A program made the translations under genes and the position numbers. Shown piece after piece: positions 25,865 to 51,296 of a stretch of DNA of 64,000 nt. How positions within the stretch are numbered: position 1 is the first letter of the stretch; each line of letters starts with the position of its first letter. This DNA comes from Schizochytrium sp. TIO01. Its lineage: Eukaryota; Protista; Bigyra: Labyrinthulomycetes. The stretch is taken from positions 8,464,483-8,528,482 of the forward strand of contig SMSO01000032.1 in assembly GCA_004764695.1 (NCBI GenBank), read 5' to 3'. The notes under the pieces were generated by a model. It was not told the DNA's origin, searched no databases, and was given only the letters and a program-made list of their open reading frames with translations.

Positions 25865-28800
25865 CTATTCTAATCGAAATCCAGGGCCAACAAGGTCTGG
25901 GGTTAGCAAAGGCGAAAGTTGTTCTTGTAGGCCAAGACGGAGATTTCTGTCATGCACATTTGCCGACCAGTATTCACGCAGTCGCTCCGCACGCAGTATT
26001 CTCCACCCTTCACGCACCTGCTCGAATGATTCAGCAAAAAAAGGGTCTTGTCCAAGTTTTCTTGAGCAGGTTCTCACATGATCATGGCAAAACCTACTAT
26101 TCGGGGAACTATACGCAAGACACCAGGCACAAAAATGATGTCCACATGTACCATTACCACATTTCACAGCACAACATGCATCAAATTGGTCGAAGCAAGC
26201 ATGGCAATTTGGACAACACGTGTTTAAGATATTCTCTTGAATATGCAATAAATGCCTCCGCACATCGCGGGTCAGCCCATCTACCTGTAAAGCTTCTGCT
26301 ATGCGCCTTTGGATCTCTTGCTCTGCTCGAGCGGATGCTTCACTTTCTGCTCTCATCTTTGCGATCAGCAGAAGATGGTCCAGAGCACTAGGAGCAAGGC
26401 GAGTAATCTCTTGACCTGTAATCCTTCCAGTGCAACCAGGTCTTACGCATGACATTGTTCCGTCAGCACCAACCAATACGCTAGCTTGCGGCTGTGCCGC
26501 AGCCTCTACTGAGCTGGCAACGCAATCTCGGCAAAAAAAGTCTCCTTCCTCGCAGCTCGTACCCTCAGTAAGTGCTATGGCCTCAAAACACACGAGGCAT
26601 GTCTCCAGAGGTATTTTAGGGGCTCCAAATGCTTCATGTTTAAGAGCCTCCTTTGCGCTAATACGCCGACCAGGGTCTGTCGCTTTAAGATTCTCAATAA
26701 GCCTCTGCATGGCAGTGGTTGGCTCAGGATACAGGTCCTCAAAGACTACACCCACAGAGTACATGTCCATTGCTGTTTCGAACTTAGTCACTGGTCCACT
26801 CTGCAACTCAGGAGCAATATAGCGTGGAGTAGCCTGAACAGATGTGTAAGTTGCGGTGCAATCCGCAACTTTGATGCCGTCGAAATCACCAATCAGCGGG
26901 GTCCCATTACTTGTGAGGAAGATGTTCTCTGGTTTGATATCACAATGTACGATGCCGCAAGTATGTATATCTACCATACCAGTAAGCAGACCCATGGCGA
27001 GTCGATCGCGAGCTACTTTGCCTTCGTTGGGATGATCTTGAATCCATTTGGCTAGGTCACCTTGTTCGTAGAAAGGCATGACGATGCAGCCACGCGGTTC
27101 GCCATGTGCTATATCTACAAAAGCACCAGTAATGCGAATCACATGCTGAGACACCACTTTTCCAAGATTTGCAGCTTGTTTGTAAAATACTTTGTATTGA
27201 CTTGAGTCGCCAAGTTGAAACTGTTTGAGGACTACAGTTTTGCCAAAATTATCAAGAACCTTTTGAACCCTCTTGCCACCTCTGGAGGTGAGGGGCTTGC
27301 CAACAGGCTGAAAATCCGAAATCTTGACGTTGGCCAACCAAAGGTCGGAAAATGCAACTTCGAAAACCCCTTCTGCATTTATATGCATCCTTTCTAGCCA
27401 GGCACTATCAAGCAGGAGTTCTGGATAATGCTTTTGTGCATGTTGCAGAGTTTCAGCAAGCTTATGACGAAAAGCTTTGCTAAGCTCGATAGGGGTCCCT
27501 TGAGAGAGAATAAGCTCTTGTTTCTTGATTCGATTTCTGTAATGCTCTTGCTCTTCCTCATCCAAATCTTCAGTCTCGAGGGCTTCTCTGGCTCTCTTCA
27601 AACTTTCTGTCGCTTTCCGAGACTTGGCAAGCCCCTGGTACAACACCTCAACATCGAAGATGTTTGGTTCTTTCGAACCTAGCTCTATGAAGTCGTGCAT
27701 CTCAGAGATCTCTTTCGGCGAAAGTTTGTGACCTATCTTCAACCGGGCTCTTCTGTTAGCGTCGGGATATAAACGCTGGAGTGAGAAGCCGATAGCTGCG
27801 AGAGTTTTAAACACTCGGGCACTTAGTGTATCTCGTCTCAGAACCTCAAGCTCTTCTTGAAGAGCGTTTTGAAGTTCAACCAGCTCAGGTGTAAGCCTCG
27901 TTGCCTGTTCAGGTGTCCTCAGGGTAATCCAGAATGCGTCACCAAGTTGCAACTCATTTGCACGAGATATGATGCTTCTAACAGCTTGGTCGCTTCGTTG
28001 TCCAATGTTGTTTGGCCGGCCTTTTTGATTCATCTTGTACTCTTCAACACACCTGGCAGATTGACTAGCGAGTTCTTTGAGGCGCTCGAACTCGTCTGCG
28101 CAAGTCCCACCGGCAACTGATACATCGTTTGTATTCAGATCTTCTAACAAGCTTGCAATCTTCACTTTGAATGCACACACTACATCGTCATCGTCTTCGC
28201 AATCTCTTGCACAGACCCATGGGTACACGTCTTTCACGAGCGCTCGCAGGCGATCTCTTTCGGCATTCCGCTGCTTGACGAGACCGTGCAAGCCATCACG
28301 AGAGCTTGCACGAATCTGATCTTGTAGCCTGTCCAAGCTTGCTTTTGAGATTTTGATGTCACTAGAGGCCTGCTGCAATTTCATTTGGCCAAAGTAGCCC
28401 TGTATCGCGGGTCCTACAAACTCCTCAAGGAGAGCAATCCCAGTCTGCACAGAGCCCCCCCCGCCTTGGCCCGCGCGTGAATTCGAGACTTGATTGGCAA
28501 GCTGCACCACATCAGCGAAACTCACACTGGCGCTGTCCGGCCGCATTCTAGTGTAAACAAGGATGTGTCAGCAAATAAAGAGCAAGAGATGCGCGCGTTA
28601 GGATCTTGGATATTTCAACTTCACAATTCGTTGAGTGACAGACAAATCATGCCAAAATCATGAACCAGCAACCAAAACATCGTGAACTTACGCAGCTATA
28701 TCCACATTGCACGGCCCCGCGACAAGTCCGGCACCAACGACACCATCTTGTTCGCTCTTGGGTTCTACAGAAGGCTCGCTTGCTGCGTCTAGCGAGAGCC

Positions 28801-29777
28801 ACGACTCTGTGTCTAAAGAATCAATATCTTCTCCGGGAGAACACACCTTTGCAAACAATTCTTTAGGAGTCAAAGACGAATTTGCATCGTAAAACCTGCG
28901 ATTTACGAATAATTGAAACAATGGGAACATCAGAGCACTCGTTAGAACAACAATGCGCGCATTCGATGACCGCCTCGCAAGCCCATGGAGACACAAGAGA
29001 ACCAGCAAAGCCAAAGGTCTACGCAGACCGCGGGCGCCAGCAGCGGCAGAAGACACGGAACTTACTCGATTCGAACAGAAGGATGAGTTTTATGCAGAGT
29101 TTTCGCGACGGCCTTGGCACCCTCGTCGCTAATATTATTCTTCCAAATACTGCGAGTACAAATAAATAAGTTCATTCATTGTCAAAACGATTCCAATTGA
29201 GTCAGTCAACCACACTTTTCTACTCCCACAAAAATGATCATAGAAAACCCTCCCTTCGCTAAAAGATCGCTCTCATTATCTTTTGTCAATTTTCTGTCTG
29301 ATCGCATTTTGTGGAAAATGCTTCAGTTCTTCCTTTCTCTTCAGATTCTTCTCTCTTCCTTTCTTTCTACTACTGTGCTTTATGCTGAATAAGATGCTAG
29401 TAGTTCGACATTTTGATCTTTTCATTACACAGAAGTACTAAAAAGAAAGGAAAAGGGAGCCATCGTGGAGTCTCAAAAAACTTACCCAAACCCTGTCAGG
29501 TTCTTGCATCCCTCGAGTGCCTTTGCGACGGCCTTTGCACCTTCATCGCCGATATTGCATTGCACGATTCTGTGCGTACATATAAATAAGTTCATTCGTT
29601 GTCAGGATAATCGTAGTGAGTGAGTCAGTCTATCCTCTTCTTCAAGGGACGAACGGCAAAATACTTCTGCGCCCCAATTGCAAATCAAATAAATGCCTTC
29701 GTTGTACTGATCACGTTTCAGATATTGAAGAAAGAACTGCCCTTCTCTTCCTGCCTCTTCCTGCCTCTTCAAATTCT

Positions 29778-29860
<83 letters not shown>

Positions 29861-32299
29861 ACACTACTGTGCTTTATGCTGAATAAGCTGCTAGTAGTTC
29901 TATATTTTGATAGGGAAGTACTTAAAAGAAAGGAAAAGGGAGCCATCGTGGAGTCTCAAAAAACTTACGCAAACCCTGTCAGGTTCTTGCATCCCTCGAG
30001 TGCCTTTGCGACCTCATCGCCAATGCTGTAACCCAGCAGACTGTACGTATTGCAACCATCAATCCAAGAAAGTCGGTCAGCCAGTGATGTGAGTGCTGTG
30101 AGTCAACCGATCCTTATCACGGGAGTTTTCTTCTGCGTCCCTAACATTCTCATCAGATCACATTTAGTGGGAGATGTCTATAAGCTACCTGCTATGTACT
30201 CAGTAGGTGCATCATTGAAGATTTCCTCTTTTTTATTTTAAAATGATCATCATGTGGTCCCCAAAAGAAAGAAAAAGGGAATCAACGCGATTCTCCGAAA
30301 CTTACACAAATGCTTTCAGGTTCTTGCATCCCTCGAGTGCCTTTGCGACGGTATTGATGCCCTCATCGCTAATCCTACTCCCACTCAAACTGTGGGTTGC
30401 ATTAATTGACTCCTTGTCAGGATACTTAGTCAGTCAATTAAAAAAATAAAAAAAAAAAATTCAAATAAACATGGAAGTCTTCTCTATGTCCCTTTTGGTT
30501 TGCTCATCTTATTGCATTCGGGTGATAAGAAGAATGAATGCGCTTTTTCATTGAAGCTCTTTCTTCGCTTCCTTTCTCGACAAGTTCTTTTGTCTAGTCT
30601 CCTAATTCATTTAATTGTGATGCTTCTATTTAAATCTAATCTCTTCGTTCATCACTTAAAGAAAGAAAAAGAAGAACTCCCGTGTATTACTACTCTCCCA
30701 AAACTTACAAAAATGTTTCAAGGTTCTCGCATCCTTCGAGTACCTTTGCGACTGCCTTGGCAACCTCATCGCCAAAGTTGTTATGGTGGAGACTGAGAGT
30801 ATAAATGAGTCCATTCATTCCGATTGAGTCAGTCGATCCTCTTCTTCATTGCAACAATCGCAGAAGTCTTTTTATGGCCATATTTGCAAATTGATTGGCC
30901 CGCATCTTTTATTAGCTTTTATTTTTATTTAAAAAATAAAATCATTTGAAAGCCTAAAAACTTGACAGATCATTTTCCCCCCTCAAGGCTTTTTCCTTTC
31001 TTTCTCTTTCGAGATCTTATTTTCTACTTATTCTATGGTCTGCCTAATGGATGGTGCTTCTATTTTCATCTCTTCGTTCCTCAAAAAAAGAAAGGAAAAG
31101 AATACCTCTCCTGAACTGCTACACTACTCTTCCCAAACTTACCCCAGTACTGTCAGGTTCTTGCATCCCTCGAGTGCCTTTACGAGTGCCTTCGCACCTT
31201 CATCACCAATGTTGTTCTGATCAAGACTGTGAGTGAAAATAAGTCCGTCCGTTTCGAGTGAGTCATTCGATTCTCTTCTTCTTCACCAAAACATTCGCAG
31301 AAGTCTTCTTATGGCCCAATTTGCGAATTGATTGGGCTTCGTTATTCTGATGATCGCATTTTTAGTTGCGTTACGAAAAGTTAATTTTGAAACCCTCGAA
31401 ACTTGAGATCATTTTTTCTCCTCAAGGCGTTCTTCTTTCAAGCTCTTATTTTCTCCCCTCCCCACTGCCATAAGTTCTACTAATTGTACTTCTATTTAAT
31501 CTTGTCAATACAACAAAAAGAAAGGAAAAGAAGAACTCTCCTGAACTGCTACACTACTCTCCCCAAACTTACCTCAATCCTGTCAGGTTCTTGCATCCCT
31601 CGAGTGCCTTTGCGAGTGCCTTCGCACCCTCATCGCCAATGTTGTTCTGATTAAGACTGTGAGTGAAAATAAGTCCATCCGTTTCGAGTGAGTCATTCGA
31701 TTCTCTTCTTCTTCACCAAAGCATTCGCAGAAGTCTTCTTATGGCCCAATTTGCGAATTGATTGGGCTTCGTTATTCTGATGATCGCATTTTTAGTTGCG
31801 TTACGAAAAGTTAATTTTGAAACCCTCGAAACTTGAGATCATTTTTTCTCCTCAAGGCGTTCTTCTTTCAAGCTCTTATTTTCTCCCCTACCCACTGCCA
31901 TAAGTTCTACTAATAGTACTTCTATTTAATCTTGTCAATACAACAAAAAAAGTAAGGAAAAGAATACCTCTCCTGAACTGCTACACTACTCTCCCCAAAC
32001 TTACTTCAATACTGTCAGGTTCTTGCATCCCTCGAGTGCCTTTGCGAGCGCCTTCGCACCCTCATCGTCAATGTTCTTCTCTCCAAGGCTGTGTTTGAAG
32101 GTGAACAAGGCATCATAAATAAAGTAAGTATGCCGTTTACAAGTTCATGAGTGCGTGTACGAACCTAATAGCCAGATTTGCTTTCTTTGTCACATCAGCC
32201 ACGAAGGGCACTCTTTCGTCTCGTCCTCTCACCATCGTGAACTTACAATATCCGCGTCGTATCTTCTCTGATGTCCTCGATTCTGTATGCCGTTGACAT
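25865..32299 (-). CDS. Gene A: LRR x8 - linker - helical region - non-RD kinase - RING1/RING2 (RBR-like) protein, 1199 aa predicted
   Basis: Exons in transcript order: 32247..32299 (MSTAYRIEDIREDTTRI), 32005..32088, 31573..31656, 31143..31226, 30709..30792, 30306..30389, 29969..30040 (72 nt), 29486..29569, 29066..29149 (capping LRR), 28692..28895, 25865..28547. All introns are GT-AG and phase 2, and the 3600-nt spliced frame is open. Motifs: LxxNNIGDEGAKALAKALEGCKNLT; VLKQ/HCDIKPEN/DFD/APE; CLVC..C..CRDC..C..C; CPNC..CCAVKC..CGHHFCAWC. Confidence 0.85.
29066..32088 (-). repeat. LRR exon-intron cassette array of gene A (8 exons, period about 340-480 bp)
   Basis: Recurring plus-strand signature AAACTTAC...TGTCAGGTTCTTGCATCCCTCGAGTGCCTTTGCG...CTG. 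Units 31143-31572 and 31573-32004 are nearly identical including the introns. Confidence 0.95.
29776..29860. repeat. (CTTT)n microsatellite inside a gene A intron
   Basis: Read directly from the sequence. Confidence 0.95.
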
Positions 32300-34096: not shown

Positions 34097-36294
34097 TCAT
34101 TCTAATCGAAATCTAGGGCCAACGATGTCTGCCGTTAGGAAAGGTGCAAGCTGTTCTTTGAGAACACGACGGACATTTCTGTCCCTGACGTTCACATTCC
34201 AATACTCACGCAACCGCTCCGTACGCACTATCCGCCACGCCTCACGAACCTGCTCAAATGAATCAGGGAAAAATAGATCTTGCCCAAGTTTTCTTGAACA
34301 GGTTCTCACATGGCGATAGCAAGCTTCACTACTCTCAGAACTATACTCAAGACACCAAGCGCAAAAGTGATGCCCACATGTATCACGACCACATTTCACA
34401 GCACAAGAACCATCGAATTGTTCAAAACAAGCTTTGCAGTTTGGGCAGCATAAGTTCAAGATATCCTCTTGAATATGCAGTAAATGCCTCCGCACGTCAC
34501 GGGTCAGCCCATCTACCTGTAAAACTTCTGATGTGCGCCTTTGAATCTCTTGCTCTGCTCGGGCGGATGCTTCACTTTCTGCTCTCATCTTTGCGATCAG
34601 CAGAAGATGGTCCAGAGCACTAGGAGCAAGGCGAGTAATCTCTTGACCGGTGATCGTTCCAGTGCATCCAGGTTCCATGCACGACATTGTCCCATCATCG
34701 GCGATAGCTACAGCTGATCGTGGATGCGTGGCAGCTTCTACTGACCTTGCAACGCAGTCTCGGCAAAGGAAGTGTCCTCTCTCGCAGCTTGTGCCGTCGG
34801 AAGGAGGATGTTCCTCCATGCACACGAGACATGTCTTTTGAAGAGCACCATCTCTGGCTGCTGCGTCTGAGGAGTCAATGTCCTCTCCGCGAGAGCACAC
34901 CCGAGCAAACAACTCCCGAGGGGTCAAAGAAAAATTACCAAAAGGCGAGCCACCGAAACTGCGTTTTGAGGATGAGTTCAAAAAGCAATGAGAACACTCG
35001 TTAGAGCAACAATGAGCGTATTTGAAGACAGTCTTAAAGTTCCATGGAGATATAGAGAACCGACGAGGGCGAGCCTCTACGCAAGATGGATTGAACAGCC
35101 GCAAAAGAAGAAACACAACTTACTCGATTCGAACAAATGGACATGATTTGTGTAAAGACTTGGCAAGTGCTTTGACGCCATCTACGTAGATGTTGTTTTC
35201 GCCGAGACTGTCAATAGATACAAATAAGTTTGGTCGTGGCCGGGACAGTTCAAATTAGTGAGTGAATGATCCGAGTGTTGTGCTTTGAATCAGTCCTTGC
35301 AAAAGAAGCATAGGAGCGTTCATCTGTGCCAATCTACTAAGCTGGGTGCCCATATTAAGGTCCCTATTTTTAATGAAAAAGAAAAGAACCAGGACTGGTA
35401 GCTCAATGCGAATTCAATGGACGTACTACAAATGAGTCAGGTTCGGACATCCTTCCAGTGCCTTTGCAACGGCCTTGGTGCCCTCAGAGCCAATGCCGTT
35501 TCCCCAAAGACTGTAATGTAAATTCATTTGTTTTAAACAACCAAAAATAAATTTGTCAGTCATTCGAATACGGGTGATCCTATCATATTCAAAAGAAACA
35601 AAGTACTTTAGAAACATCAAATCGAGCGTAGCTTCCCGTGAGTACCCAAAACATACTCCAATTCTACCAGGTTCTTGCATCCCTCTAGTGACTTTGCGAT
35701 GGACTTGGCACCCTCAACCCCAATGTTGGACCCCCAAAGACTGTGGGCATTTCAAGCATTGTCAGCAAAATCTATGACAGTCAGTCGTTCAAATCTCGTG
35801 TGAATAATCATAAAAGTATTTTTCTGTGCCCGATCGCAAATTTAGTGCCCTCATTATTCTTCGCGCATTATATTAGCAATCGAACCAAACCATGGTACTA
35901 GGATACCATGATGGTTTACGATAAATGAAAACTTTGGATTTCCTTTCCTGCTTCATATATGTACAACCAAAAAATATACATTGCTTTTTGTGGATTCACA
36001 AAACATACCTCAAATATATCAGGTTCTTGCATCTCTCCAGTGCCTTTGCGACGGTCTTAGCGCCCTCGGTGCCAATGTTGTCCCCACCAAGACTGTGTTT
36101 GTTGGTAAACAGAAGAAGTAAGTGTGCTATTCCGCAAGTTCATGACTGCCAATATAAAACTAGTATACAAAACTTGCTTTTTACAACACATCGGTCACGC
36201 AGAGAATCCGTGTGTCCTCCCTCTCACGATCAAGCACTTACTCTACCTCTGTTGTATCCTCTTTGATGTCAATAATGCGCGTTACCTTGGTCAT
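34097..36294 (-). CDS. Gene B: LRR x4 - linker - RING1/RING2 protein without the helical and kinase regions, 416 aa predicted
   Basis: Exons: 36242..36294 (MTKVTRIIDIKEDTTEV), 36009..36092, 35657..35740, 35427..35510, 35124..35207, 34097..34958. All introns are phase 2 and the 1251-nt frame is open. The linker LTPRELFARVCS runs straight into CLVCMEEH. Confidence 0.82.
35124..36092 (-). repeat. LRR exon array of gene B (4 x 84 nt)
   Basis: Four 84-nt exons, each bounded by a CAG acceptor and a GT donor on the minus strand. Confidence 0.92.
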
Positions 36295-37755: not shown

Positions 37756-40700
37756 TTACAGTCTAAATCCTGGGTCAACGATGTCTGGTGTTAGCAGAGG
37801 CTCAAGCTGCCGTCCGAGAGCATGTCGAAGATTTCTGTCTTGAATATTTTCATTCCAATATTCACGCAGACGCTCCGCGCGCAATATTCTCCAACCTTGA
37901 CGAACCTGCTCAAATGAATCAGCGAAATATGCATTACGCGTAAGTTTCCTTGGGCAGTTCCTCACATGATCATGGCAAGCACGGTTGCTCTCAGAACTAT
38001 ACTCAAGACACCAAGCGCAAAAGTGATGCCCGCATGTATCACTGCCGCATTTTACAGCACAGCATGCATCAAATTGGTCGAAACAAGAATGACAATTTGG
38101 ACAACACGTGTTCAAGACATTCTCTTGAATATGTAGTAAGTGTCTCCGCACGTCACGGGTCAGCCCGTCTACCTGCAAAGCTTCTGCTATGCGTCTTTGA
38201 ATCTCTTGCTCGGCCCGAGCCGATGCTTCACTTTCTGCTCTTGTCTTTGCTATCAGCAAAAGATGATTCAAAGCCCTCGGTGCAAGGCGAGTCATCTCTT
38301 GACCCGTGAATCCTCCATCACAACCAGGCTCAACGCACGACATGGTCCCATCATTAGCGATAGTCACAGAAGCTTGTGGCTGCGCAGCAGCTTCTACTGA
38401 TCTTGCGATGCAGTCTCGGCAAATGAAGTGTCCTCTCTCACAGCTTGTGCCGTCGGAAAGAGGATGTTCCTCCATACATACGAGGCAACCTTCTACAGGA
38501 GCGTCAGGAATGCCAAATGCATCATGCTGGAGTACTTCACGAGCGCTTAGACGTTGACCAGGGTCTGTTGCTTTCAGAGTTGCAATGAGCTCCTGCATTG
38601 CAGTGGTCCGCTCAGTGGGATACAGGTCTTCTAAGACTACACCAACAGAGTACATGTCCACGGTTGTTTCAAACTTATCTACGGGCCCATTCTTCAACTC
38701 AGGTGCAATGTACCGTGGTGTTGCTTGAAGTGACGTGTAAGTTGCAGTACAATCTGCAACTTTAATGCCGTCAAAGTCGCCTATCAATGGGGTTCCGTTG
38801 CTCGTAAGAAATATGTTATCTGGTTTGATATCACAGTGCACAATACCGTGAGTATGCAAATCTGCTACACCAATAAGTAAGCCCATGGCGAGTCGGTCAC
38901 GCACAGCTTTGTCTCCGCGAGGATGATTCTCAATCCATTGGGCCAAGTTGCCTTGTTCATAGAAAGGCATCACGATACAGCCGCGTGGTACTCCATGCGT
39001 CAGGTCCACAAAAGCACCGATAATTCGAATCACATGTTGGGAAGTCACCTTGCCTAGGTTCACAACCTGTTTGTAGAACATCTTGGATAGACTTGGGTGT
39101 CCAAGTTGAAATTGTTTGAGAACCAAGGTCTTGCCATTTCCGTCAAGAACCTTTTGCACTGTCTTGCCGCCTCTAGAGGCCAGGAGGTCTCCAACATACT
39201 GAAAGTCTGGGGCCTGTACATTCGCTAGCCAGAGGTCCGAGCAAGCCACTTCAAAGAGGCCCTCGGCACTTATATGAAGCCTTTCTAGCCATGTTTTGTC
39301 TTGTAGCAGCTCTGGGTAATGCTCCTGCGCGTGTTGCAGAGTTCGAGCAAGCTTATGACGAAAAACTTTACTAAGCTCGATAGGGCTACCCTGAGAGAGA
39401 ATTCGCTTTTGTTTCTCGATTCTACTCCTGTAATGCACCCGTTCTTCGTCTTCCAAGTCCTCAGCCTCAAGATCTTGTTTGGCTCTCTTCAAACTTTCTG
39501 TTGCTTTTCGTGACTTGCAAAGTCTCTCATATAGCGCCTCAACATCTGAGATATTTGGCTCTTTGGAACCTAGTAATGCGTAATCATATATCTCGGATAG
39601 ATATTCCGGTGAAAGCCTACTCGCGTTACGTAACGCGGCTCGTTCGGCGTGGCCATCCAACCGATAGAATGCCAAGCTGATCGCTGTGAGGATTTCAGAT
39701 ATTTCGGCACTTAGAGTATCTCCTCGAAGAGCTTCAAGTTCTTCTTGAAGAGCACTCTCAAGTTCCAACAGCTCAGGTTCCAGCTTCAGAGCCTTTTCAG
39801 GTTGCCTGAGAATAACCCATGATAGATCGCCTAGGTTCAACTCATTTGCTCGAGACATGACACTTTCAACAGCACATTGGCTTCTGTCACCAATGTTGTT
39901 GGGCCGAGCTTCTCCATTCATCTTGTACTTTTCAATACACGTTGTAGCTTGAGAAGCGAGTTGTTGGCAGTGTATGAGATCGTCTACGCGTGCCTGTTGA
40001 ACTACTGAAAGATTGCTTAGATTCAGTGTCTGTAGCAAACTTGTAAGTTTCACTTTATATTCGTGGGCTACGTAGGCATCACTTTGGTAGTGATTTGGGT
40101 GGACCCATGTGTACACATCTTGCACGAGTGATCGTAGGCGATCTCTTTCGTCGTTCCTCTTTTCGATGAGACTTAGGACACCATGACGAGGGTCTTTGCG
40201 AATCTGATCTTGAAAGGCATCTAGATTCTGTTTGGACTTCTTGACGTCATCGAAGAGCTTTCGCAATTTCACATGACCAAAATAGCTCTGGATTACTGGT
40301 CCTACAAATTCTTCAAGCAAGGTAATGCCAGTCTGCAGGGAGTCTCCTCTCGCCCCACCTCTGTCTGCGCGCGAGGCTGAGACTTCCTGGGCAAGTTGCA
40401 CCACTTTAGTGAAACCCACGCTGGTATGACTCGGCCGTCCTCTGAAGTATTTTGGGTTCAGGGGGTGAGTAAAAGCACCGGCAGCAGGAAAAGCAACAGC
40501 AGAAAAAACAACAGCAAAGGATGAGCTAGTTAGAATCCCATCTATTTCAAAACAAAAACAACAGCAACTCGTGGGATGAATTATCATTAGAAGAACACCG
40601 AACCAAAGAATGCATGAACTTACCTATACTCTTCCGAGGCGTACGCTTCCGTAGCATATTTGACGGTTTCGACTTCATCTTGCTCCCCTGAGAGAAGCAC

Positions 40701-43639
40701 CGCCTTTGCAAACGATGCTTTCAGGATCAAGGTTGAGAGAAAGTGTATCAAACGAGCGAGTGAAAGGGCTATGGCACTCGTTAGAGCAACGCTGAGTACA
40801 TTCAAAGACAACCTCGGAAGTGCATCATTCTTGGGCTTTGCAAGAGGCTCACATGTCGGGTCTCTTGAGATAGAAGAGTTGTTATCTGAGAAATACATGT
40901 CCTCTATAAAAAAATAGATTCTAGCGAACAGTTCTTCCGGGGTGAAAAGCCAGAAAGAATACTGCGACGGCAGTAACCAAACTTTATCATAGAATTTGCA
41001 CACGAAAATCATTGAAAGAATCGAAGCACATATCAGGGCAAGGATAAGCGCATTCGAACAGAGCTTCGAAGGTGCACGAATCTTGGGTTTTGCAGAATAC
41101 TCAACCACCGTACTGCAAGAAAGCGTTGGAGGTTCATGGATCTTAGGCTTTGCAGGAGGCTCGACTGCTGTGTCGCTCGCGACACAAGAATCGGCATCTG
41201 AGACATCAATGTCATCTTCGGGAGAGCAAACCCTAGAGAACAGCTCTTTGGGCAAGTAAACTTGATGAGAATAGCGTGACGGCGACCACCAAAAATCATC
41301 ATAGAAACTGTATTATATGAGAATAAATGAAAAATCAGAGAACTTGTTAGAAGAACGATAAATGCATTCGAATACAGCCTCACAAGTCCATTGAGGCACA
41401 TAAAACCAACGAAAGAAATGCTCGGGAGCGGCAAACAGCAGGTAGAGGAAACCAAACTTACTCGATGCGAACAGAAGAACATGCTTTATGCAGAGACTTG
41501 GCGATAGCCTTGTACCCCTCCTTTCCAATGTTGCTGTGAGAAAGACTGTGAACATTCCACTCATCTCCAGAGGCAATCCAAATCAGTTAGCATTTCGTTC
41601 GAGCATAGTTGACCCCCCCTCTTCTGATAATCGCAGACGACTTCGTCTGCGTTCCTTCCCCTAATTAACCACTCCTAATTAGCGCAATTTCATTAACGGA
41701 ACAAGTAAATAGTCGAGTTCTTTCCCCGTCCATCTTCATCTTCTCTTTCTTTCTTCTTGAACCACGACACGTTTTTGTACGCCTTTGATTTTATTCATCA
41801 AAAAGAAAGTTGTTATCCAGGGCAGAAATTAATTTCATGGGTTCGAAAAACGTACAATATATCTTTCAGATTGCTGCATCCCTCCAGAGCCTTTGCAACC
41901 GCCTTGATGCCCTCTGTGCCAATGTTGTTCTCTCGTAAACTGGGAGTATATTTTTGTTACCAAGAATCCAAACCAGTCAGTCAGACAATCTTTAATCCCT
42001 CGTCTTTTATTTTCTTTGTCTATTAGTTTTGAAAGTTCCAGAACCCGCTTTTTGCCGTTGCTAAGCAATTCTCATCATCATTCTCATCATCATTCTGGTC
42101 GCAATAGATTATTTAAATAAAAATCGACTTGTCCTGCTTTCAGCATGTTCTTTCTTTCAAAACGTACCACAGTGTTGTCAGGTTTGGGCAACCCTTCAGA
42201 GTTTTTGCCACGGCTTTGACGCCCTCATCACCAATTTTGTTGTTGTGTAGGCTGCGAGTGATTACTTGTTGCCCAGGCAGTTCAGTTAGTCCGCTTGTCA
42301 ATTAATTATTTTTCAAAGTAATCACAGAACCTTTCTTCAGCTTTAGCTGTCGCTCTGCTGGTTTTTATTTGCCCCCCTCACCTTCTTTTCTTTTTTTAAA
42401 GAAACTACAGATTTTTACGTAGTGAGGTTTCATCCTATGTTTTCATCGAACGAAAGAAACGAGGAAATGCATGCAGATTTTGTGGATCAAATAATACGTA
42501 CTTCAAGTTTGTCAGGTTCCTGCATCCCTCGAGTGTCTTTGCGAGAGCCTTAGCGCCATCAGTGCCAACATTATTATCTTTAAGACTGTTGGTGTTTCGC
42601 GTGTTTTCCAGACAAGTAAAGTCAGTCATTCGCTTGGGTGCTGTCAGTCCACGCTCCTTTTCGACAATCACAGCACTGGCTCTGCACTTCTTTTGCACAT
42701 TGTCCTTCACATTGAACACGAGTTCCTTTTCCTCTCTTTCTTTCTTTCTCTCCAAATTCTTTCGTTCAAAACTACTGCGTAAGGCCTTCCTGCAGATTAT
42801 TAAAAAACGTACTACATTGTTGTCAGGCTCTTGCACCCCTCCAGTGCCTTTGCGATGGCCGTGATGCCTTCATCGCCGATCTTGTTTCCAGAAAGACTGC
42901 AAATGTTTCGTTCATTGTCCAGACAATTGAAGTCAGTTACTCCCTGAGGTCACGTCCATGAATCCTATTCGAGGATTCGCTCTCCTTATACTCTTTCTTC
43001 TTCCTTTCTGTAGGAAATAAAAAATATCGGATTCGAGGTGACGTACTACAATTGTGTTAGGTCCTTGCATCCCTCTAGTGCCTTTGCGAGGGTATTCGCA
43101 CCCTCGTCGCCAATATTGTTTCCAGAAAGACTGTGGTCATGTTATTCGTTGTTTTAAAACAATCCAAGTTAATCAGCTTTCAATGAATTCTTCTAAAAGC
43201 AATCACATAACTGTTCCTGGCCTTGCGAGTGCCCTGTGTTCTCATCATGATTCTGATCGCTATGCTGTTGTCTCTTGTTTTTTTCATTTTCATTTTCTTT
43301 TTTCATTTTTAAATAATAAAAAAATTAACTGAAAAAAGATTTTGTTGTTGGTGTGTTTTTATGAAACAGCAAAAAGGAAACTGAATACTTCTGTGGATTC
43401 AAAACGTACCATAATAGTGTCAGGTCCTTGCATCGTTTCAGTGCCTTTGCAACAGCCTTAATACCCTCATCGTCGATGTTCTTATTGCGAAGACTATGTT
43501 TGTTGATTAAAAAAGGTAGTAAGTATATCACTGACTAGTTGAATAAGTGCCAATACAAAACAAGTCTACAAAGCTAATAAAGCGTCGATAACCCAAGCTT
43601 ACTCCTCTCGCGATTGCGAACCTACATTATCTCCCCCAT
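37756..43639 (-). CDS. Gene C: LRR x7 - triplicated linker with two hydrophobic segments - helical region - non-RD kinase - RING1/RING2, about 1323 aa from the in-frame ATG at 43639
   Basis: Exons: 43626..43639 (the ancestral start position 43678 reads AGG), 43410..43493, 43047..43130, 42813..42896, 42502..42585, 42168..42251, 41856..41939, 41462..41545, 40624..41307, 37756..40441. All introns are GT-AG and phase 2, and the frame is open. HCDIKPDN, DFD and APE motifs plus the zinc module as in gene A. Confidence 0.8.
41462..43493 (-). repeat. LRR exon array of gene C (7 x 84 nt)
   Basis: Seven 84-nt exons, mostly with GTACGT donors. Confidence 0.92.
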
Positions 43640-44672: not shown

Positions 44673-47600
44673 TTATTCCAATCTAAAATTTGCGCCAACA
44701 ATATCTGGTGTTAGCAAAGGTGACAGTAACTCTTTCAGAACGAGTCGAAGATTGCTATCCTGAATTTTTGAATTCCAGTACTCACGCAGACGTTCTGCGC
44801 GTAGCAGCCGCCAAGCCTCACGAACCTGCTCGAATGAATCAGCGAAATGTAGATCTTGCCCAAGTCTTCTTGAACAGGTTCTCACATGAGCATGACAAGC
44901 ATCTGCATCCTGAGAACTATAGCCAAGACACCAAGCGCAGAAGTGATGACCACAAGCACGATTAATACACTCTACAGCACAGCACTCATCAAAATCGCCC
45001 ACATAAGCGTTACAATTCGGGCAACATGTGCTCAAGATCTTCTCTTGAATATGTAGTAAATGATGCTTTGCGTCACTGTTCTGTTCACCTGCACGTAGAA
45101 CTCCTGCTATGCGCCTTTGGATCTCTTTCTCCGCCCAAACTGCTGCTTCATTTTCTGCCTTCATCTTCGCAATCAACAAAAGATGATTCAAAGCAGTTGG
45201 TGCAAGACGGGTGATTTCTTGACCTGATATCCTTCCACTACATTCAGGTTTCATGCATGCCATCGTTCCATCAGCATCCACTCTGACGTTAGCAAGTGGC
45301 CCTGCCGCCTCTTCTATTGAAGATTCGATACAGTCTCTGCAAAGGAAGTCTCCCTCCTCGCAGCTCGTGCCCTCGGAAAGCAGATGCTCCTCCATACATA
45401 CTAGACATTCCTTGAGAGGGATTTTAGGAGGTCCAAAAGCTTCATGTTGGAGTGCTTGGCGAGCGGTTGGACGCTGGCCAGGGTCTGTTGCTGTAAGAGC
45501 ATCGATAAGTTTCTGCATTGCAGCGGTTCGCTCAGTAGGATACAGCTCCTTTAAGCTGATGCCCACAGAGTACATGTCCATCGCTGTTTCAAACCTATCT
45601 ACAGGCCCATTCTGCAACTCGGGGGCAACGTACCGTGGCGTTGCCTGAAGTGATGTGTAAGTTGCCGTGTAGTCTGCATTCTTGATGCCGTCAAAGTCGC
45701 CGATCAATGGTGTCCCGTTGCTTGTAAGGAAAATGTTTTCTGGTTTGATGTCACAATGCACAATGCCGTGGGTATGTAAATCCGCCACGCCGATGAGTAG
45801 GCCCACAGCAAGTCGGTCGCGCGCTGCTTTGCCTTCGTTAGGATGAGACTCAATCCACTTGGCAAGGTCACCTTGCTCGTAGAAAGGCATGACAATACAG
45901 CCACGCGGTGCTCCATGAGTCATGTCCACAAAAGCACCAGTGATACGGATCACGTGCTGAGAAACCACTTTGCCCAGATTGGCAACTTGTTTGTAGAAGG
46001 TTTTAGATTGACTTAGATGTTCAAGCTGAAACTGCTTGAGAACTAGAGTTCTGCCATCTCCATCAAGAACCTTCTGGACAGTCTTACCTCCTCTGGAAGC
46101 TAGGAGATCTCCAACAGGCTTGAAGTCTGAAATCTCGACGTTTGCCAGCCAAAGATCAGAACAAGCTACTTCAAAAACACCTTCTGTACTTACATGAAGC
46201 CTTTCCAGCCAGGCTCTATCTTGCAGCAACTCTGGATAATGTTCCTGCGCGTGTTGCAGAGTCTCAGCAAGCTTATGACAAAAAGCTTTGCTAAGCTCGA
46301 TAGGGTTGCCTTGAGAGAGAATGAGCTCTTGTTTCTTGATACGATTTCTAAAATATGCTCGATCTTCCTCATCAAAGTCCTCAGCGTCGACAGCTTCTCT
46401 AGCTCTTCTTAAGCTTTCTGTGGCTTTCCTCGACTTGTCAAGTTTCTGGTATAATGCTTCCACATCTGAGACAGAAGGTTCTTTCAAATCCAGTACTGCA
46501 TAGTCATATAGTTCGAAGAGCTCTTTTGGTATGCACTTGCTCGCGTCATTCAACGCAGAACTTTCAGAGTATCCTTCAAATCGAGCAAATGTTGAACTTA
46601 TCGCGCAAAGTATTTTGCACAATTGGGCACGAAGTGTATCTCCTTGTAGAGCTTCAATCTCTTCCTTGAGAGCACTCTCAAGTTCAGACAACTCGGGTTC
46701 TAGCTCCATGGCCTGGTCGGGTGTTCTCAGAGCAACCGATAATCCATCACCAAGTTCTAGCTCAGACAATCGAGAGACGACGCGTTTTACAGCCTGTTGG
46801 CTTCGTTCACCAATGTTGTTGAGGAGTTGGCCTTCTCCACTCCTTTTATACCCTTCCACGCATTGAACAGCCTGAACAACGAGTTCTTGGCAGTGTTTGA
46901 AGTCATCTGTGCTGGTATCTTCATCGACTGGTGCAAGGTTGATCTTTAGATCTTGTACCAAACTTTCAACTCTCACTTTGAATTCTCGCACTGCACTCTC
47001 ATCACTTTCGCAAAGGTTAGCGCGAACCCATGGGTACACGACCTGCAAAAGTGAATGCAGGTGCCTCCGCTCGGTGTTCCGTTTTTCGATGAGGCTGGGC
47101 AAGACATCTGCAGAGCTTGCACGAATCTGGCTTTGTAGCTTGTCCAGACCCTCTTTGGAGTTCTTGATGTCAGCGGAAACCTGTCGCAACTTCACTTGGC
47201 CAAAGTAGCCCTGGATCGTCGGTCGAACGAATTCCTCAAGCAGGGCAATCCCAGCCTGCAGGGAGTTTCCTCTGACCCCGCCTCGGTCCGCGCGCAAGTC
47301 CGAGACTTTCTTGGCAAGCTGCACCACATCAGCGAAACTCACGCTCGCTCCATCCAGCCGTTGTCTAAGGCGAACAAGACAGAAGAAGCAGCAACAGAGG
47401 CAGAAGCAAAAGTTAGAATTCCCAATATCTCAACAACACAATTCGTGGAATGAATGCTCGCGGTCCCAAACATAGAAGTCGCATGAACTTACTGAGATCT
47501 ATCTAAACCGCGAGGCTCCGTAGCAAGCCCGGCGCCAGCGACGCCATCTTGCACGCTCTTGGACTCTAAAAGAGGCTTGCATTTTGCTGCCTCTATATAG

Positions 47601-50600
47601 GTACAGGAATCGCTGTCTAATGAGGAATCGGCAATGTCCTCCGCTGGAGAACACACCCTTTCGAACAATCGTTTAGGCGTCAAAGGTCTCCAACCGTAGA
47701 TACTGCGTTTCGGAAACGAATGAATAACGCGAATGAAAGAGAATAAAAGCGCGTGTTAGAAAAACGATGAACACATTCAAAGACGACCTCGCAAGTCCAT
47801 GGAGACACAGAGAGAACCATAGAAGGCAAAGCTCTGAGCAGAGGGAACGGAACTTACTAGATTTTAACAGAAGGACATGCTTTGTGCAGAGACTTTGCGA
47901 CGGCCTTTGCGCCCTCTGAGCCAATATTGTTGCCCAAAAGACTGTGAGTATAAATAAACAATGAGCTCAGAGAGACAGCTCCGTCAGTGATTCGATTCAT
48001 CCTCTTTATTTATTTTTCAAAACGCCTAGTAAAAAAGTAATCACCTCTTCTTTTCTGCCTTCGCGTTTTATGAAGACACCACAGTAGATTTCCCCTTTCC
48101 CTCCCTTCTTCTCTTTTAATTTTAAAAAAGCAGGTAAAGAGTTGTTTTCCTTTCTAAACTACTCAACTACTTAGGTAGTACTAGCAGTGTTTTCATCTTG
48201 ATTCCTTGCCCCCCCTTTCCAAAAACAAAAAATGAAAGAAGGAAAGAAGGAAAGAAGGAAGGAATGAAAGAAAGAAACAGATAAACCATAGTAGGTTGGT
48301 ATTACCTGTTATGAGGCTACCTACATATAGCTTTCTGTGCAAACTTACTTCAATTCTGTCAGGTTCTTGCATCCCTCGAGTGCCTTTGCGAGTGCCTTCG
48401 CACCCTCATCGCCAATGTTGTTCTGATCAAGACTGTGAGTGAAAATAAGTCCATCCGTTTCGAGTGAGTCAGTCGATTCTCTTCTTCATCAAAGCAATCG
48501 CATAAGTCTTCCTATGGCCCAATTTGCGAATTGATTGGGCTTCGTTATTCTGATCGCATTCTTCTTTGCGTTACGAAAAATATATTTTGAAAACCTCGAA
48601 ACTTGAGATCATTTTTTCTCCTCAAGGCTTTCTTCTTTCAAGCTCTTATTTTCTCCCCTACCCACTGCCATAACAAAGCTTCTGCTTCTATTCGAATACA
48701 TAAACAAACAAACAGAAGAACTCTTGTGTACTATTACACTACTCTCCCCAAACTTACTTCAATTCTGTCAGGTTCTTGCATCCCTCGAGTGCCTTTGCGA
48801 GTGCCTTCGCACCCTCATCGCCAATGTTGTTCTGATCAAGACTGTGAGTGAAAATAAGTCCATCGAGTTCGAGTGAGTCAATCATTCGTCTTCTTCATTA
48901 CAACAATCGCAGAAGCTTTCTTCGGGTTCTATTTGCAAATTAATTGGCCCTTGTTACTCTGATTGCATTTTGGTTTGTTTTTACAAAAAGAAAGAAAAAG
49001 AAGAACTCCCGACTCTTCACAAACTTACCTCAATATTGTCAGGTTCTCGCATTCCTCCAGTGCCTTTGCGACCGCCTTGACACCCTCATGGCTAATGTTG
49101 TTCTGGTTAAGGCTGCGAGTATAAATAAGTCCATCGATTTCAAGTGAGTCAGTCGATCCTCATTTTATATACAACAATTATGGAACTCTTCTTGTTCCGG
49201 TTCAATTTACAAATCTATTAGCCGTGGTTATTCTGATATCGCATTTCTATTTACCAAAAAATTATTTTGAAAACCTAAAAACTTGAGATCATTCTTTTTA
49301 AAGGCTCTCTTTCCTTCCTTCTCGCGCTCAATCTTTTTTTTTTCTTTACCAGTATTTATTTTATAACTCTCGTGTACTACTCTACTCTCCAGAAACTTAC
49401 CTCAGTGTTTTAAAGTTCTTGCATATCTCCAGTGCCTTTGCGTCTGCCTTGGCACCCTCATCGCCAATGTCGTTCCGATCAAGACTGAGAATATAAATCA
49501 GTTCATCCATTTCAAATCAGTCAGTCGATCCTCTTCTTCATTACAACAATCACTGAGTTTCCGTCTGACCCTATTTGCAAAACAATTGGCCTTTTTTACT
49601 CTGATCGCCTTTGCGAAGAGAATGAAAAAGAAGTACTAGCACTCTTTTAAACTTACCTCAATTCTGTCAGAAATCGTACGCTAACACCACAAGCATCCTC
49701 TAGACTTTGAGTAGAATCAGTTTCCTCACGCCTTTGAGAAAGTCCAGCAGTGCGCGAAATATTTTCCTTGGTGATTGCGCGCTTTCTCGAACTTATCAGC
49801 AATACCAGAATGGGTTTCAAAATTTGAAGAAAAGCGCCAAGCAAACTTGGCCTCAACGATACTATAAAATTGAAGATAAATCTTAGAGAATCTGTCCGAG
49901 GTTTAGAGAAAGCTCGGGTCTCACTGCTTTCGGTGTTCTCCCCTTGGCCTGACCTTCTGCGCTTGCCTGCGCCTTCACTACTCGAAGACGTACTTGAATC
50001 TCCCTGATTGTTGGCTAGCACTTTGCCGACCAGGTTTTTTAAGGTTCCGCAAGTATTTTCGTCCAAATTGTCTGGGCATAACAAAGCCGCGCACCACTGG
50101 TTGAATTTCTTGAGTTTTTCTCCATCAAAGTCTTCATGATAGAAGATCTTTGCAATATCTACCATCCCACTAGTGTAGTTATCTCGCAGCATTCTTACGC
50201 ATAAATAGGCCTTGAAGAGAAAAGAATCGTCTAGATCTAGGGGTAATCTGAAAGTGTCACGAGAATCAGATGGATTTTCTTGGTTTTTTTTTTTAAGATA
50301 TTGTTGGACTTTCTGTACAATGTCTTTTTTTTTCTGCACCTGATCGATCAATCGATAGAAAACTTCGAAAGCAGGTGGTTCACCTCGGGTCATTTCGCCG
50401 GAATTTTTAGGAATGCCTCCAAATTGAATCCAGCGAGAGATCTCACCGTGCCTGTATTCTGTGGACAATCCCAAAAGCTTATCTAAGTGTCTAAGAACAT
50501 CTTTTTGAAAATAATTAAGCACCTTCTTCTTCTTCTTCTTCTTCCCCCCATTATTATCATTCTTCTTCTTCCCCCCATTATTATCATTTTTTTTTTTTTC

Positions 50601-51296
50601 CAACGGTTTGTCCATTTTTTCCAACATGTCTTTCAAGACTTCAGAAAGATTTTGACCCTCAAACGATTGCCAATGTGTCTCATCATTGAAGATAAGGCGA
50701 AAAACCACACGCTGTAAACATCTCTTTGTTTCTTCGGAAATATTTGTATCAGTGACCTTTCTGTTTTGTTGAATGTTTTCCAGTGGATTGCTTAGAATGC
50801 TCCCCAAAATTCTAGTTGCCTTTGTTCGAGCTACAAATTGACTAGAATTTTGAACGAGAACTTCATCTCTCAAATCAACCAGGAATTCGGTGATCTTTTG
50901 AATGTCGTCTCCACTATATGGACGATTATCGTATGTAATTTGCTTCCGGGCGTGAAAATTCTGTTGTTCTCCTTGTTGTGGCCCTTCTGGTCCTTGTGGA
51001 GGAGAAGAAGATATTGTGTTGACGTCAACCTCTCTCTGCGAAGCACCAATTCCCCCAAAGTTACTATCTGTAGAAGCTTGAGAGCTTTGACCTCTGGAGG
51101 TAGTAGAACTTAATGGAGATTCACGAAGCAGCGGGCTATCTGTCATAGTGTGAATATTTTGTGAATCTTCACTGTCTTCTTGTGGATGATTTCCTAAATC
51201 ATCATCTCGATGAGGTAACGATGGGTAATTTATATAAGGAACCTCCGACTCAAACTCCTCCTCGGTACATTCGATTAGATCATCTAATTCACTCAT
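44673..51296 (-). CDS. Gene D: captured N-terminal region (paralog of the gene E N-terminus) - LRR x5 - linker - helical region - non-RD kinase - RING1/RING2, 1653 aa predicted
   Basis: Exons: 49657..51296, 49401..49484, 49029..49112, 48758..48841, 48349..48432, 47858..47941, 47493..47702, 44673..47364. All introns are phase 2 and the 4962-nt frame is open. The 547-aa ORF ends in CTGACAGAATTGAG|GTAAGT, which is the 3' end and donor of an LRR exon. Confidence 0.78.
47858..49484 (-). repeat. LRR exon array of gene D (5 x 84 nt, plus a terminal LRR-exon fragment at 49657-49670)
   Basis: Exons 48349..48432 and 48758..48841 are identical to each other, and the introns resemble gene A introns. Confidence 0.93.

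Follow-up and report, generated by a model that had tools for sequence, protein, structure and literature searches.

How heterotrophic marine protists such as the thraustochytrids recognize viruses or bacteria is a matter on which, to our knowledge, almost nothing is known. Here, we ask what is encoded by four tandem minus-strand genes, designated A to D, in a 64,000-nucleotide stretch (8464483-8528482) of contig SMSO01000032.1 from Schizochytrium sp. TIO01 (hereafter the window), which join arrays of exons encoding one leucine-rich repeat (LRR) each to a zinc module and, in A, C and D, also to a protein kinase. The data show that these genes represent a transcribed, spliced and selectively maintained family of proteins composed of LRRs, a helical domain, a kinase and a module resembling RING-between-RING (RBR) ubiquitin ligases, with diversifying LRR faces and exchange of LRR cassettes. 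On balance, we regard it as probable that A to D are members of a large labyrinthulomycete family of soluble modular proteins, probably cytosolic, which constitute an undescribed kind of intracellular recognition receptor. The genes bear the signatures that have served to find immune receptors in plants and animals, that is an expanded and clustered family, a hypervariable ligand face, cassette exchange and conserved enzymatic effectors. New in the present work are the splice evidence for gene A, the evidence for an RBR-like fold, the arguments against a plain RING in the zinc module, the distribution of the effector cassette and the selection figures for the locus.

Arrays of single-repeat LRR exons

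A first-pass annotation, made from the sequence of the window alone, had listed 24 LRR exons of 84 nt, with one exception of 72 nt, all flanked by phase-2 GT-AG introns. A mechanical search of the minus strand for open AG-84 nt-GT segments recovered the 84-nt exons, and the complete set of 24 was found at the listed places, eight in gene A, four in B, seven in C and five in D; 23 measure 84 nt and the remaining one, in gene A (30040-29969), 72 nt. Upstream of every exon stands a (c/t)ag acceptor and downstream a gta(a/c/t)gt donor. The first base of each exon completes a codon split by the preceding intron and its final two bases open the next split codon, so that the introns are phase 2. The boundaries of all 24 exons thus bear out the proposed organization of one LRR per exon with symmetric phase. 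Each 84-nt exon encodes one RI-type repeat, with a 27-residue stretch like L-x-x-N-N-I-G-D-E-G-A-K-A-L-A-K-A-L-E-G-C-K-N-L-T-x-L, in a register of 28 residues that agrees with the consensus LxxLxLxxNxIgdeGaxaLaxaL (Pfam LRR_6, PF13516). Translations of individual exons (27 residues) matched LRR_6 with E values from 6.4e-5 to 0.08, a single exon spanning only half a Pfam unit. The observation of 24 such exons is real and lies far beyond chance expectation. As repeat exons with symmetric phase 2, they tolerate duplication, loss, skipping and exchange between genes with the reading frame being kept.

Via a linker exon, the arrays join in frame to large open reading frames (ORFs; A 25865-28546, B 34097-35116, C 37756-40587, D 44673-47342). 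The summed exon lengths of 3600 nt (A), 1251 nt (B), 3972 nt (C) and 4962 nt (D, including a 546-codon exon discussed below) are all divisible by three; this frame check uses exon lengths alone, and database searches were run exon by exon. The large ORFs of A, C and D encode a helical domain, a kinase and the zinc module in this order, the first of which, 390 residues placed between LRRs and kinase, had escaped the first-pass annotation, so that its domain order has to be amended at this point. An Rfam scan of the window returned no RNA family.

The LRR face diversifies while the effector exons are conserved

Variation within the repeat is focused on four codons. Among the 23 exons of 84 nt, entropy amounts to 2.6-3.6 bits at repeat positions 2, 3 and 26 and to at most 2.05 bits elsewhere, and the junction codon is variable as well. 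The variable positions are the x residues of LxxLxLxxN on the concave beta-strand face, which binds ligands in solved LRR proteins. Comparison of 60 cassette pairs with similar flanking introns, taken from the window and four paralogous arrays, yielded a divergence of 40.6% for the four variable codons as against 5.4% for the remaining exon sequence and 2.0% for the introns; the pairs were picked on intron similarity and intron divergence is therefore biased low, whereas the contrast within the exon is unaffected. Estimates of the ratio of nonsynonymous to synonymous divergence (dN/dS) for the effector cassette are 0.09-0.22 for the kinase, which is its most constrained domain, 0.14-0.29 for the zinc module and 0.19-0.43 for the helical domain. 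The effector cassette is under purifying selection.

Shuffling of exons, as suggested earlier, is evident from the comparison of cassettes with effector exons. Over ~405 nt including introns, units A1 and A2 share 92% identity with D3, whereas identity of the effector exons is 76%, with a synonymous divergence (dS) of ~1 between A, C and D, i.e. with silent sites being saturated. Thus, LRR cassettes move between long-diverged genes. In the paralogue L039 (G000:C35:2429400-2439399, minus strand), at least 20 LRR exons are arranged as a repeating block of ~5 different cassettes, a pattern that indicates block duplication within one array. A search of the genome (64 Mb, 37 contigs) with the effector exon gave at least 51 matches, 45 of these 51 being free of stop codons, and the effector exon of gene D is 82-90% identical to ~40 paralogues genome-wide.

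Splicing of gene A is predicted to yield a soluble polypeptide

To assess splicing, contigs of four public runs were compared with window positions 28400-34000, i.e. with the region of gene A. X1 and X2 are transcriptome-sized contig sets, X3 is of uncertain kind and X15 is genome-sized and represents DNA. Joints for six of the ten introns of gene A are present in RNA-like contigs of three runs and absent from the DNA run. X1 and X2 share the joints 32247/32088, 30710/30390, 29969/29149, 29066/28895 and 28692/28547, all of which except 29066/28895 are also found in X3, and a further joint at ~31575/31226 (LRR2-LRR3) occurs in X1, X2 and X3. The introns removed at 32247/32088, 29969/29149, 29066/28895 and 28692/28547 are bounded by GT..AG on the minus strand (CT..AC on the plus strand); the two intra-repeat joints (LRR2-LRR3 and LRR4-LRR5) came out with shifted ends. 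A single contig of 340 nt comprises 52 nt of the kinase exon, the complete linker exon and the last LRR exon. In X15, none of the joints is seen and one contig runs uninterrupted through both linker introns. Depth in X1 is ~450-585 for exon contigs versus ~43-60 for unique intron contigs, as compared to a flat ~150-210 in X15; this contrast fits the assignment of X1 and X2 as RNA, which is the tool's guess. For gene A, where the first-pass annotation had called for mapping of RNA, the RNA-like contigs provided the joints between mini-exon and LRR1, between LRR8 and linker, and between linker and kinase exon. That LRRs, kinase and zinc module reside on a single polypeptide, as had been claimed, is upheld by the spliced contigs of gene A together with a complete MMETSP transcript of the same domain order (see below).

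The N-termini of the proteins had been described as invisible among the ORFs. They are not missing: a mini-exon of 17 codons opens genes A and B and is common to paralogues. The corresponding joint of gene A, 32247/32088, is present in X1, X2 and X3 and absent from the DNA run X15, and homologous 17-codon exons, followed by 6-11 LRR exons, were found in the paralogues L036-L038. The protein encoded by gene A accordingly begins with a hydrophilic peptide of 17 residues, and the hydrophobic stretch that follows LRR8 in the genomic sequence is intronic, in keeping with the cytosolic location assumed earlier, as far as gene A is concerned. A reading of gene A as a membrane receptor was considered and is ruled out, as the spliced contigs remove this hydrophobic stretch after the last LRR as an intron.

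The joint 29969/29149 connects LRR6 with LRR8 and omits the exon 29569-29486. Another joint leads into this exon, whose first codons then read differently. As contigs assembled from repeats may be chimeric, exon skipping in gene A is no more than a lead. Contigs of other strains differ exactly at the junction codon or at the first codons of an exon (31573-31575 and 29562-29569, minus strand), which suggests allelic or paralogous variation centred on the variable codons. The intron between LRR6 and LRR7 contains, at 29700-29870, a (AAGAAAGA)n-like microsatellite, which generates artefactual ORFs of KKER or FLSF repeats on both strands and at which reads seem to be cut. Upstream of the mini-exon (32300-34070, minus strand), RNA-like contigs extend over more than 1.1 kb in X1 and up to 1.8 kb, and a contig of X2 reaches to ~25 nt from the stop codon of gene B, the sequence in between being poor in ORFs. 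These contigs may reflect a very long leader with upstream ORFs, or alternatively overlap of the gene B trailer with the gene A leader, or read-through.

The zinc module resembles RBR ligases and lacks an IBR

All four genes encode the zinc module, which was modelled for gene A with an AlphaFold pLDDT of 85. In an alignment of 14 copies, the first finger has the spacing C-x2-C-x11-C-x3-(H/D)-x2-C-x2-C-x24-C-x4-C, the fourth ligand being His in B, C and the distant relatives. Residues 6-93 of the module superimpose on RING1 of RNF216 with a VIA Z score of 10.3 and a root-mean-square deviation of 2.1 over 82 residues, and the next ~30 VIA rows are likewise RING1 domains of RBR proteins (HOIL-1, parkin, HOIP and ARIH2, with Z down to 6.3). 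Foldseek comparison of the whole module is led by RNF216, HOIL-1, ARIH2, HHARI and parkin, with a best E of 1.2e-3. The RBR assignment of the first-pass annotation therefore stands as regards an RBR-type RING1 fold and the Rcat spacing of the second finger, and falls as regards the IBR. No Cys/His cluster is found in module residues 65-135 of the 14-copy alignment; the fingers are separated by a helical hairpin of ~60 residues (model helices 70-76, 78-112 and 119-133). Finger 2 reads CP-x-C-x9-CC-x3-C-x4-C-x4-C-x2-C-x10-CH-x-H-x3-C and is followed by ~65 helical residues that close the module.

Two RING-like fingers could also form an ordinary RING-type E3 scaffold or a protein-binding module in which the Cys pair of finger 2 is structural. 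Indeed, the best sequence match of finger 2 in the PDB is the RING of RNF4 (E 3.8e-5 for the tandem construct and 0.003 for the single RING), Pfam scores zf-RING_UBOX at E 0.002 for gene B as compared to E 0.5-1 for IBR/Rcat, both being below threshold, and the lack of an IBR would fit such a module as well. However, the His of the CGH motif, which is required as fourth ligand in a plain RING, is replaced by Gln in one paralogue and by Lys, Tyr, Cys, Ala or Ser in all distant relatives, whereas Cys155, for which a cross-braced RING has no use, is invariant among the paralogues. Moreover, the core spacing of finger 2, C-x2-C-x9-C-x4-C-x4-C-x4-C-x2-C, is that of the Ariadne Rcat, and the RING1 fold and the ranking of the whole module favour RBR proteins. 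Finger 2 aligns without a gap with RING2 of Ariadne (1wd2; query 9-49 with chain 8-48, E 0.017 with a profile). The Cys pair is near-invariant among paralogues and present in those distant relatives that keep finger 2, and the putative catalytic Cys is encoded by TGT or TGC in A, C and D, whereas B, which keeps all zinc ligands, has TCT (Ser) at this place. On the strength of the ungapped Ariadne spacing, the invariant Cys155 and the non-conserved CGH His, we favour finger 2 as an Rcat with good confidence and consider a plain RING module unlikely. The module is filed here as a predicted ligase that is RBR-like and IBR-less, and not as a canonical RBR. A word-indexed protein search with the zinc module returned only two close Logan relatives, and a PDB search with an enlarged profile (A4) was uninformative, being dominated by kinase matches, as the full-length relatives had added kinase columns.

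The kinase is of an atypical non-RD type

The kinase of A, C and D matches Pkinase (PF00069) with E values ranging from 3e-26 (A) to 9e-30 (D) and 93-104 bits at a cut-off of 31.7. According to the family alignment, all copies and likewise the relatives from Hondaea and MMETSP have retained the beta3 Lys (VLK) and the motifs HCDIKPEN, DFD and APE. HCD replaces the RD motif in A, C and D, in every paralogue examined and in all distant relatives, and the earlier assignment as a non-RD kinase can thus be extended to the family as a whole. Two elements depart from the canonical kinase: according to alignments with 9gmp and StkP, and family-wide, the alpha-C Glu is replaced by Gln, and the glycine loop is degenerate, reading SRGGKxV in place of GxGxxG. 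Among solved chains, the closest is that of an uncharacterised 'Map kinase kinase-like protein', 9gmp_A (single-sequence E 7.5e-14, profile E 3.9e-27); a literature search on 9GMP returned nothing relevant. Judged by its motifs, the domain is an atypical non-RD kinase that keeps all three residues whose loss defines pseudokinases.

The family-wide Gln at the alpha-C position and the degenerate glycine loop would also be compatible with a pseudokinase of the kind found in MLKL or IRAK-like proteins, which would act as a scaffold or a switch, the output being provided solely by the ligase or the helical domain. We attach a low probability to this explanation, as the beta3 Lys, the HCD Asp, the Asn of the catalytic loop, the DFD Asp and APE are all conserved and the kinase is the domain with the lowest dN/dS. 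In addition, fold searches with the helical domain gave no significant match and hence no support for a four-helix bundle of the MLKL type.

The effector cassette occurs with different repeat sensors in distant relatives

The helical domain (390 residues, all-helical, AlphaFold pLDDT 81 for gene A) is conserved together with the kinase. It matched no Pfam family, no PDB entry in a profile search and no entry of the ESM Atlas. Compared to solved folds, including 4HB/HeLo domains as in MLKL, the model gave no significant match, the best Foldseek E being 0.14 and the best VIA Z 8.9 with a three-helix Habc bundle, which is below the meaningful level for helical proteins. Rows for alpha-pore-forming toxins and the coiled coil of ZAR1 were rejected, as they lie at noise level for helical proteins.

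A profile of the helical domain found only 16 proteins among 1.84 billion cluster representatives. Most of the relatives scanned have the helical domain followed by the same kinase; the order is reversed in P0016, and no kinase was seen in P0009. The same pair of zinc fingers is also present in several relatives. Their N-termini consist of LRR_6 repeats (E 1.4e-33 in P0011), ankyrin repeats or both. All named relatives are from Hondaea fermentalgiana, where P0007, P0009, P0010 and P0012 have the helical-kinase(-zinc) cassette with ankyrin repeats instead of or alongside LRRs and are annotated merely as 'Ankyrin-2' or 'Protein kinase, putative'. P0020, from a cluster containing a transcript of MMETSP0960, is a complete ORF of 1240 amino acids with 12 LRRs, the helical domain, the kinase, RING1 and the Rcat-like finger, showing that in a distant relative the full architecture is present on one mRNA. 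The search for the architecture beyond the genome, which had been proposed in the first-pass annotation, thus retrieved relatives with either LRR or ankyrin sensors, and the effector cassette is a unit in evolution that can be combined with different repeat sensors.

Genes B, C and D deviate from gene A

The features of the four genes are compiled in Table 1. The last exon of gene B contains neither the helical domain nor the kinase, and Ser (TCT, 34408-34406) occupies the position of the putative catalytic Cys. Gene C has lost the usual ATG, and an in-frame ATG four codons ahead of the donor leaves only MGEI before LRR1; its linker contains the linker motif twice and two hydrophobic stretches and may be further spliced internally. 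Gene D is devoid of the mini-exon. These deviations would be expected if B, C and perhaps D were decaying or rearranged non-functional copies and only A a working receptor. However, every frame is open and every exon sum is divisible by three, B retains all zinc ligands, and purifying selection acts on the effector exons of C and D. We therefore regard decay of these copies as a possibility that deserves attention, albeit one with the weight of probability somewhat against it.

Table 1. Coordinates of the exons and motif codons of genes A to D within the window
Feature	Position	Strand	Remarks
Gene A, start mini-exon	32247..32299	-	ATG + 17 codons (MSTAYRIEDIREDTTRI) + 2 bases of split codon; GTAAGT donor
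Gene A, LRR array (8 exons)	29066..32088: 32088-32005, 31656-31573, 31226-31143, 30792-30709, 30389-30306, 30040-29969 (72 nt), 29569-29486, 29149-29066	-	AG/GT bounds, phase 2; some joints in RNA-like contigs
Gene A, linker exon	28692..28895	-	204 nt, 68 codons, acidic, motif TPKELFAKVCSP; joints 29066/28895 and 28692/28547, GT..AG, in X1 and X2
Gene A, effector exon	25865..28547	-	Helical domain 28525-27353, kinase 27352-26600, zinc module 26623-25868
Gene A, effector motif codons	27226-27224, 26947-26939, 26887-26879, 26176-26174	-	beta3 Lys, HCD, DFD and putative catalytic Cys, respectively
Gene B, start mini-exon	36242..36294	-	MTKVTRIIDIKEDTTEV; homologous to mini-exon of A, in-phase donor
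Gene B, LRR array (4 exons)	35124..36092: 36092-36009, 35740-35657, 35510-35427, 35207-35124	-	AG/GT bounds, phase 2
Gene B, last exon	34097..34958	-	Shortened linker straight into zinc module; in-frame acceptor cgcag/T
Gene C, mini-exon remnant	43626..43639	-	Homology to mini-exon of A; in-phase GTAGGT donor
Gene C, LRR array (7 exons)	41462..43493: 43493-43410, 43130-43047, 42896-42813, 42585-42502, 42251-42168, 41939-41856, 41545-41462	-	AG/GT bounds, phase 2
Gene C, enlarged linker exon (predicted)	40624..41307	-	684 nt open; in-phase acceptor and donor
Gene C, effector exon	37756..40441	-	Helical domain 40416-39244, kinase 39243-38491 (Pkinase E 5.9e-27), zinc module 38514-37759; acceptor homologous to that of A
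Open exon upstream of gene D (546 codons)	49657..51296	-	GT donor in phase of D LRR1
Gene D, LRR array (5 exons)	47858..49484: 49484-49401, 49112-49029, 48841-48758, 48432-48349, 47941-47858	-	AG/GT bounds, phase 2
Gene D, linker exon	47493..47702	-	Acceptor cgcag/T, donor CA/gtaagt, in phase
Gene D, effector exon	44673..47364	-	Helical domain 47336-46164, kinase 46163-45411 (Pkinase E 9e-30), zinc module 45434-44676

To judge by its open frame and donor, the 546-codon exon upstream of gene D could be either the N-terminus of gene D or a separate gene. It gave no Pfam family, no ESM Atlas match and no homologue in a word-indexed protein search, and it is unique to the locus except for a 29%-identical stretch in a neighbouring gene on the plus strand. 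The latter is an ORF of 1283 codons (53691-57542, plus strand) arranged head-to-head with the 546-codon exon, the similarity extending over ~290 residues; Pfam detected neither HET nor TPR in this ORF and only a sub-threshold match to EFR3_ARM (E 0.004). Other neighbours, at 18561-20558 and 8932-10704, both on the minus strand, are unrelated, namely a conventional protein kinase with a full Pkinase match (E 5.7e-61) and a homoserine dehydrogenase with an ELFV_dehydrog-like N-terminal part.

A model for recognition and its alternatives

The receptor reading favoured here can be phrased as a sequence of steps. Following a short N-terminal peptide, a solenoid of 4-8 RI-type 28-residue LRRs (at least 20 in paralogues) would present its variable face to a fast-changing ligand, most likely a non-self protein of a virus, bacterium or other parasite, and the conserved effector cassette would follow. 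Binding of the ligand may release an autoinhibited state. The kinase could then phosphorylate the ligase module, ubiquitin or the bound target, in the manner of a PINK1-parkin-like switch in cis, and the Cys of the Rcat would take ubiquitin over from an E2 and hand it to the target or the receptor itself. Gene B may act as a sensor-only decoy or regulator, or may be a decaying copy. An immune role of the family is inferred only. A more far-reaching version holds that these proteins form a self-contained class of innate immune receptors of protists, in which a hypervariable LRR face, varied by germline exchange of cassettes with or without exon skipping in each transcript, allows capture of a pathogen protein, the kinase switches on the IBR-less RBR module in cis, the captured protein becomes ubiquitinated and the helical domain mediates oligomerisation. 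We put this version forward tentatively, as in its entirety it is doubtful; if true, it would represent a single-chain version of a sensor combined with the logic of PINK1 and parkin.

Several observations weigh against the receptor reading. There is no known ligand of the genes or link to a pathogen. Lacking the alpha-C Glu and a normal glycine loop, the kinase might be weak or inactive. The zinc module has no IBR, the RING of RNF4 matches finger 2 about equally well by sequence, and the Pfam score of this finger for IBR/Rcat stays below threshold. No fold match was obtained for the helical domain, which leaves a third of the effector without an assigned role. Furthermore, the RNA nature of the runs is a guess and their contigs give neither isoform structure nor expression level, and the splice models of B, C and D are derived from their homology with A and the paralogues, the start of D being a prediction from an in-phase donor.

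With the same architecture, the LRR face could also be directed to partners within the species or the cell itself, i.e. serve allorecognition and fusion incompatibility, mating, kin discrimination or the control of selfish elements. Of the 51 copies, at least 26 are located no more than ~300 kb from the end of a contig, and fungal incompatibility loci are also marked by large, fast-evolving families with hypervariable repeats that are enriched at chromosome ends. The want of any tie to a pathogen would suit this explanation, too. However, no polymorphic partner gene was seen beside the four genes, and outside this family it is mainly in innate immunity that RI-type LRRs are known to be fused to effectors of the kinase or ubiquitin type. 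A role in recognition within the species is thus improbable in our estimation.

As to the receptor reading, its predictions can be tested in Aurantiochytrium, which is genetically tractable. A natural RBR-like module that is devoid of an IBR and covalently tied to a kinase could reveal how phosphorylation is coupled to RBR activation. Gene finders and ORF scans miss exons of 84 nt, so that in public thraustochytrid annotations such receptors are likely cut down to 'protein kinase, putative', a naming that is indeed carried by entries of Hondaea.

Comparison with known systems

In the literature searched, we found no description of this combination of LRRs, a kinase and an RBR-like effector. 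Similarity to established systems is therefore considered part by part. With the vertebrate NOD/NLRC proteins, the family shares 28-residue RI-type repeats (LRR_6) and a probable role as cytosolic sensor, and NLRC genes typically devote one 84-nt exon to each repeat. In contrast, CARD and PYD are lacking here and the effector is enzymatic and present in cis. No NACHT or NB-ARC was detected by Pfam at E up to 0.1 in the large exons, and the exons between LRRs and kinase exon contain only the linker. Having no recognizable NTPase, the family is not an NLR. The plant LRR receptor-like kinases XA21 and FLS2 likewise have a non-RD kinase, comparable to the HCD found throughout the family, and non-RD kinases are over-represented among pattern-recognition receptors. 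However, the plant proteins are transmembrane with extracellular LRRs of the plant type, whereas the spliced product of gene A has neither a signal peptide nor a membrane segment and does not qualify as a receptor kinase of this kind; the predicted enlarged linker exon of gene C may carry hydrophobic stretches.

As regards the effector, RBR ligases (RNF216/TRIAD3, HOIL-1, parkin, HOIP and ARIH1/2) have in common with the zinc module the RING1 fold with a trailing helix, the Ariadne-like Rcat spacing and a Cys at the catalytic position, but differ in having an IBR where the helical hairpin is found here, and sequence scores of the module remain under the Pfam thresholds. We know of no RBR subfamily in which an RBR is fused to a kinase and LRRs. 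Control of an autoinhibited RBR by a kinase is exemplified by PINK1 and parkin, which are two separate proteins without LRRs, whereas kinase and RBR-like module reside on one chain in the present family. LRRs that recognize targets and are joined to a ubiquitin ligase are found in animal LRSAM1 (LRR-RING) and in bacterial IpaH/SspH (LRR-NEL). In IpaH, a Cys-dependent ligase is kept autoinhibited by the LRR as long as no target is bound. By analogy, such LRR-E3 fusions with IpaH-type autoinhibition offer the closest parallel for the mechanism proposed here, although they have other ligase folds, no kinase, no arrays with one repeat per exon and do not form a hypervariable family.

The closest described kind are the candidate receptors of the brown alga Ectocarpus, i.e. 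LRR-ROCO and LRR-kinase proteins encoded by clustered genes with one LRR per exon, in which cassettes are shuffled and solvent-exposed LRR residues evolve under positive selection (PMC3341825; PMC11378527). Alternative use of LRR exons has also been described for brown algae (PMC3341825; PMC11378527), which may be set beside the exon-skipping joints of gene A. Both organisms are stramenopiles, and the present family combines an exon-per-LRR organization and symmetric intron phase with cassette exchange and diversifying change at exposed residues, as expected for receptors of the Ectocarpus type. Type I LRR exons of Ectocarpus measure 72 nt and encode 24 residues (PMC3341825), as compared to 84 nt and 28 residues of the RI type in Schizochytrium. 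The effectors differ as well: a ROC-COR GTPase or a kinase alone in Ectocarpus is contrasted here by a helical domain, an atypical kinase and an RBR-like module on one chain.

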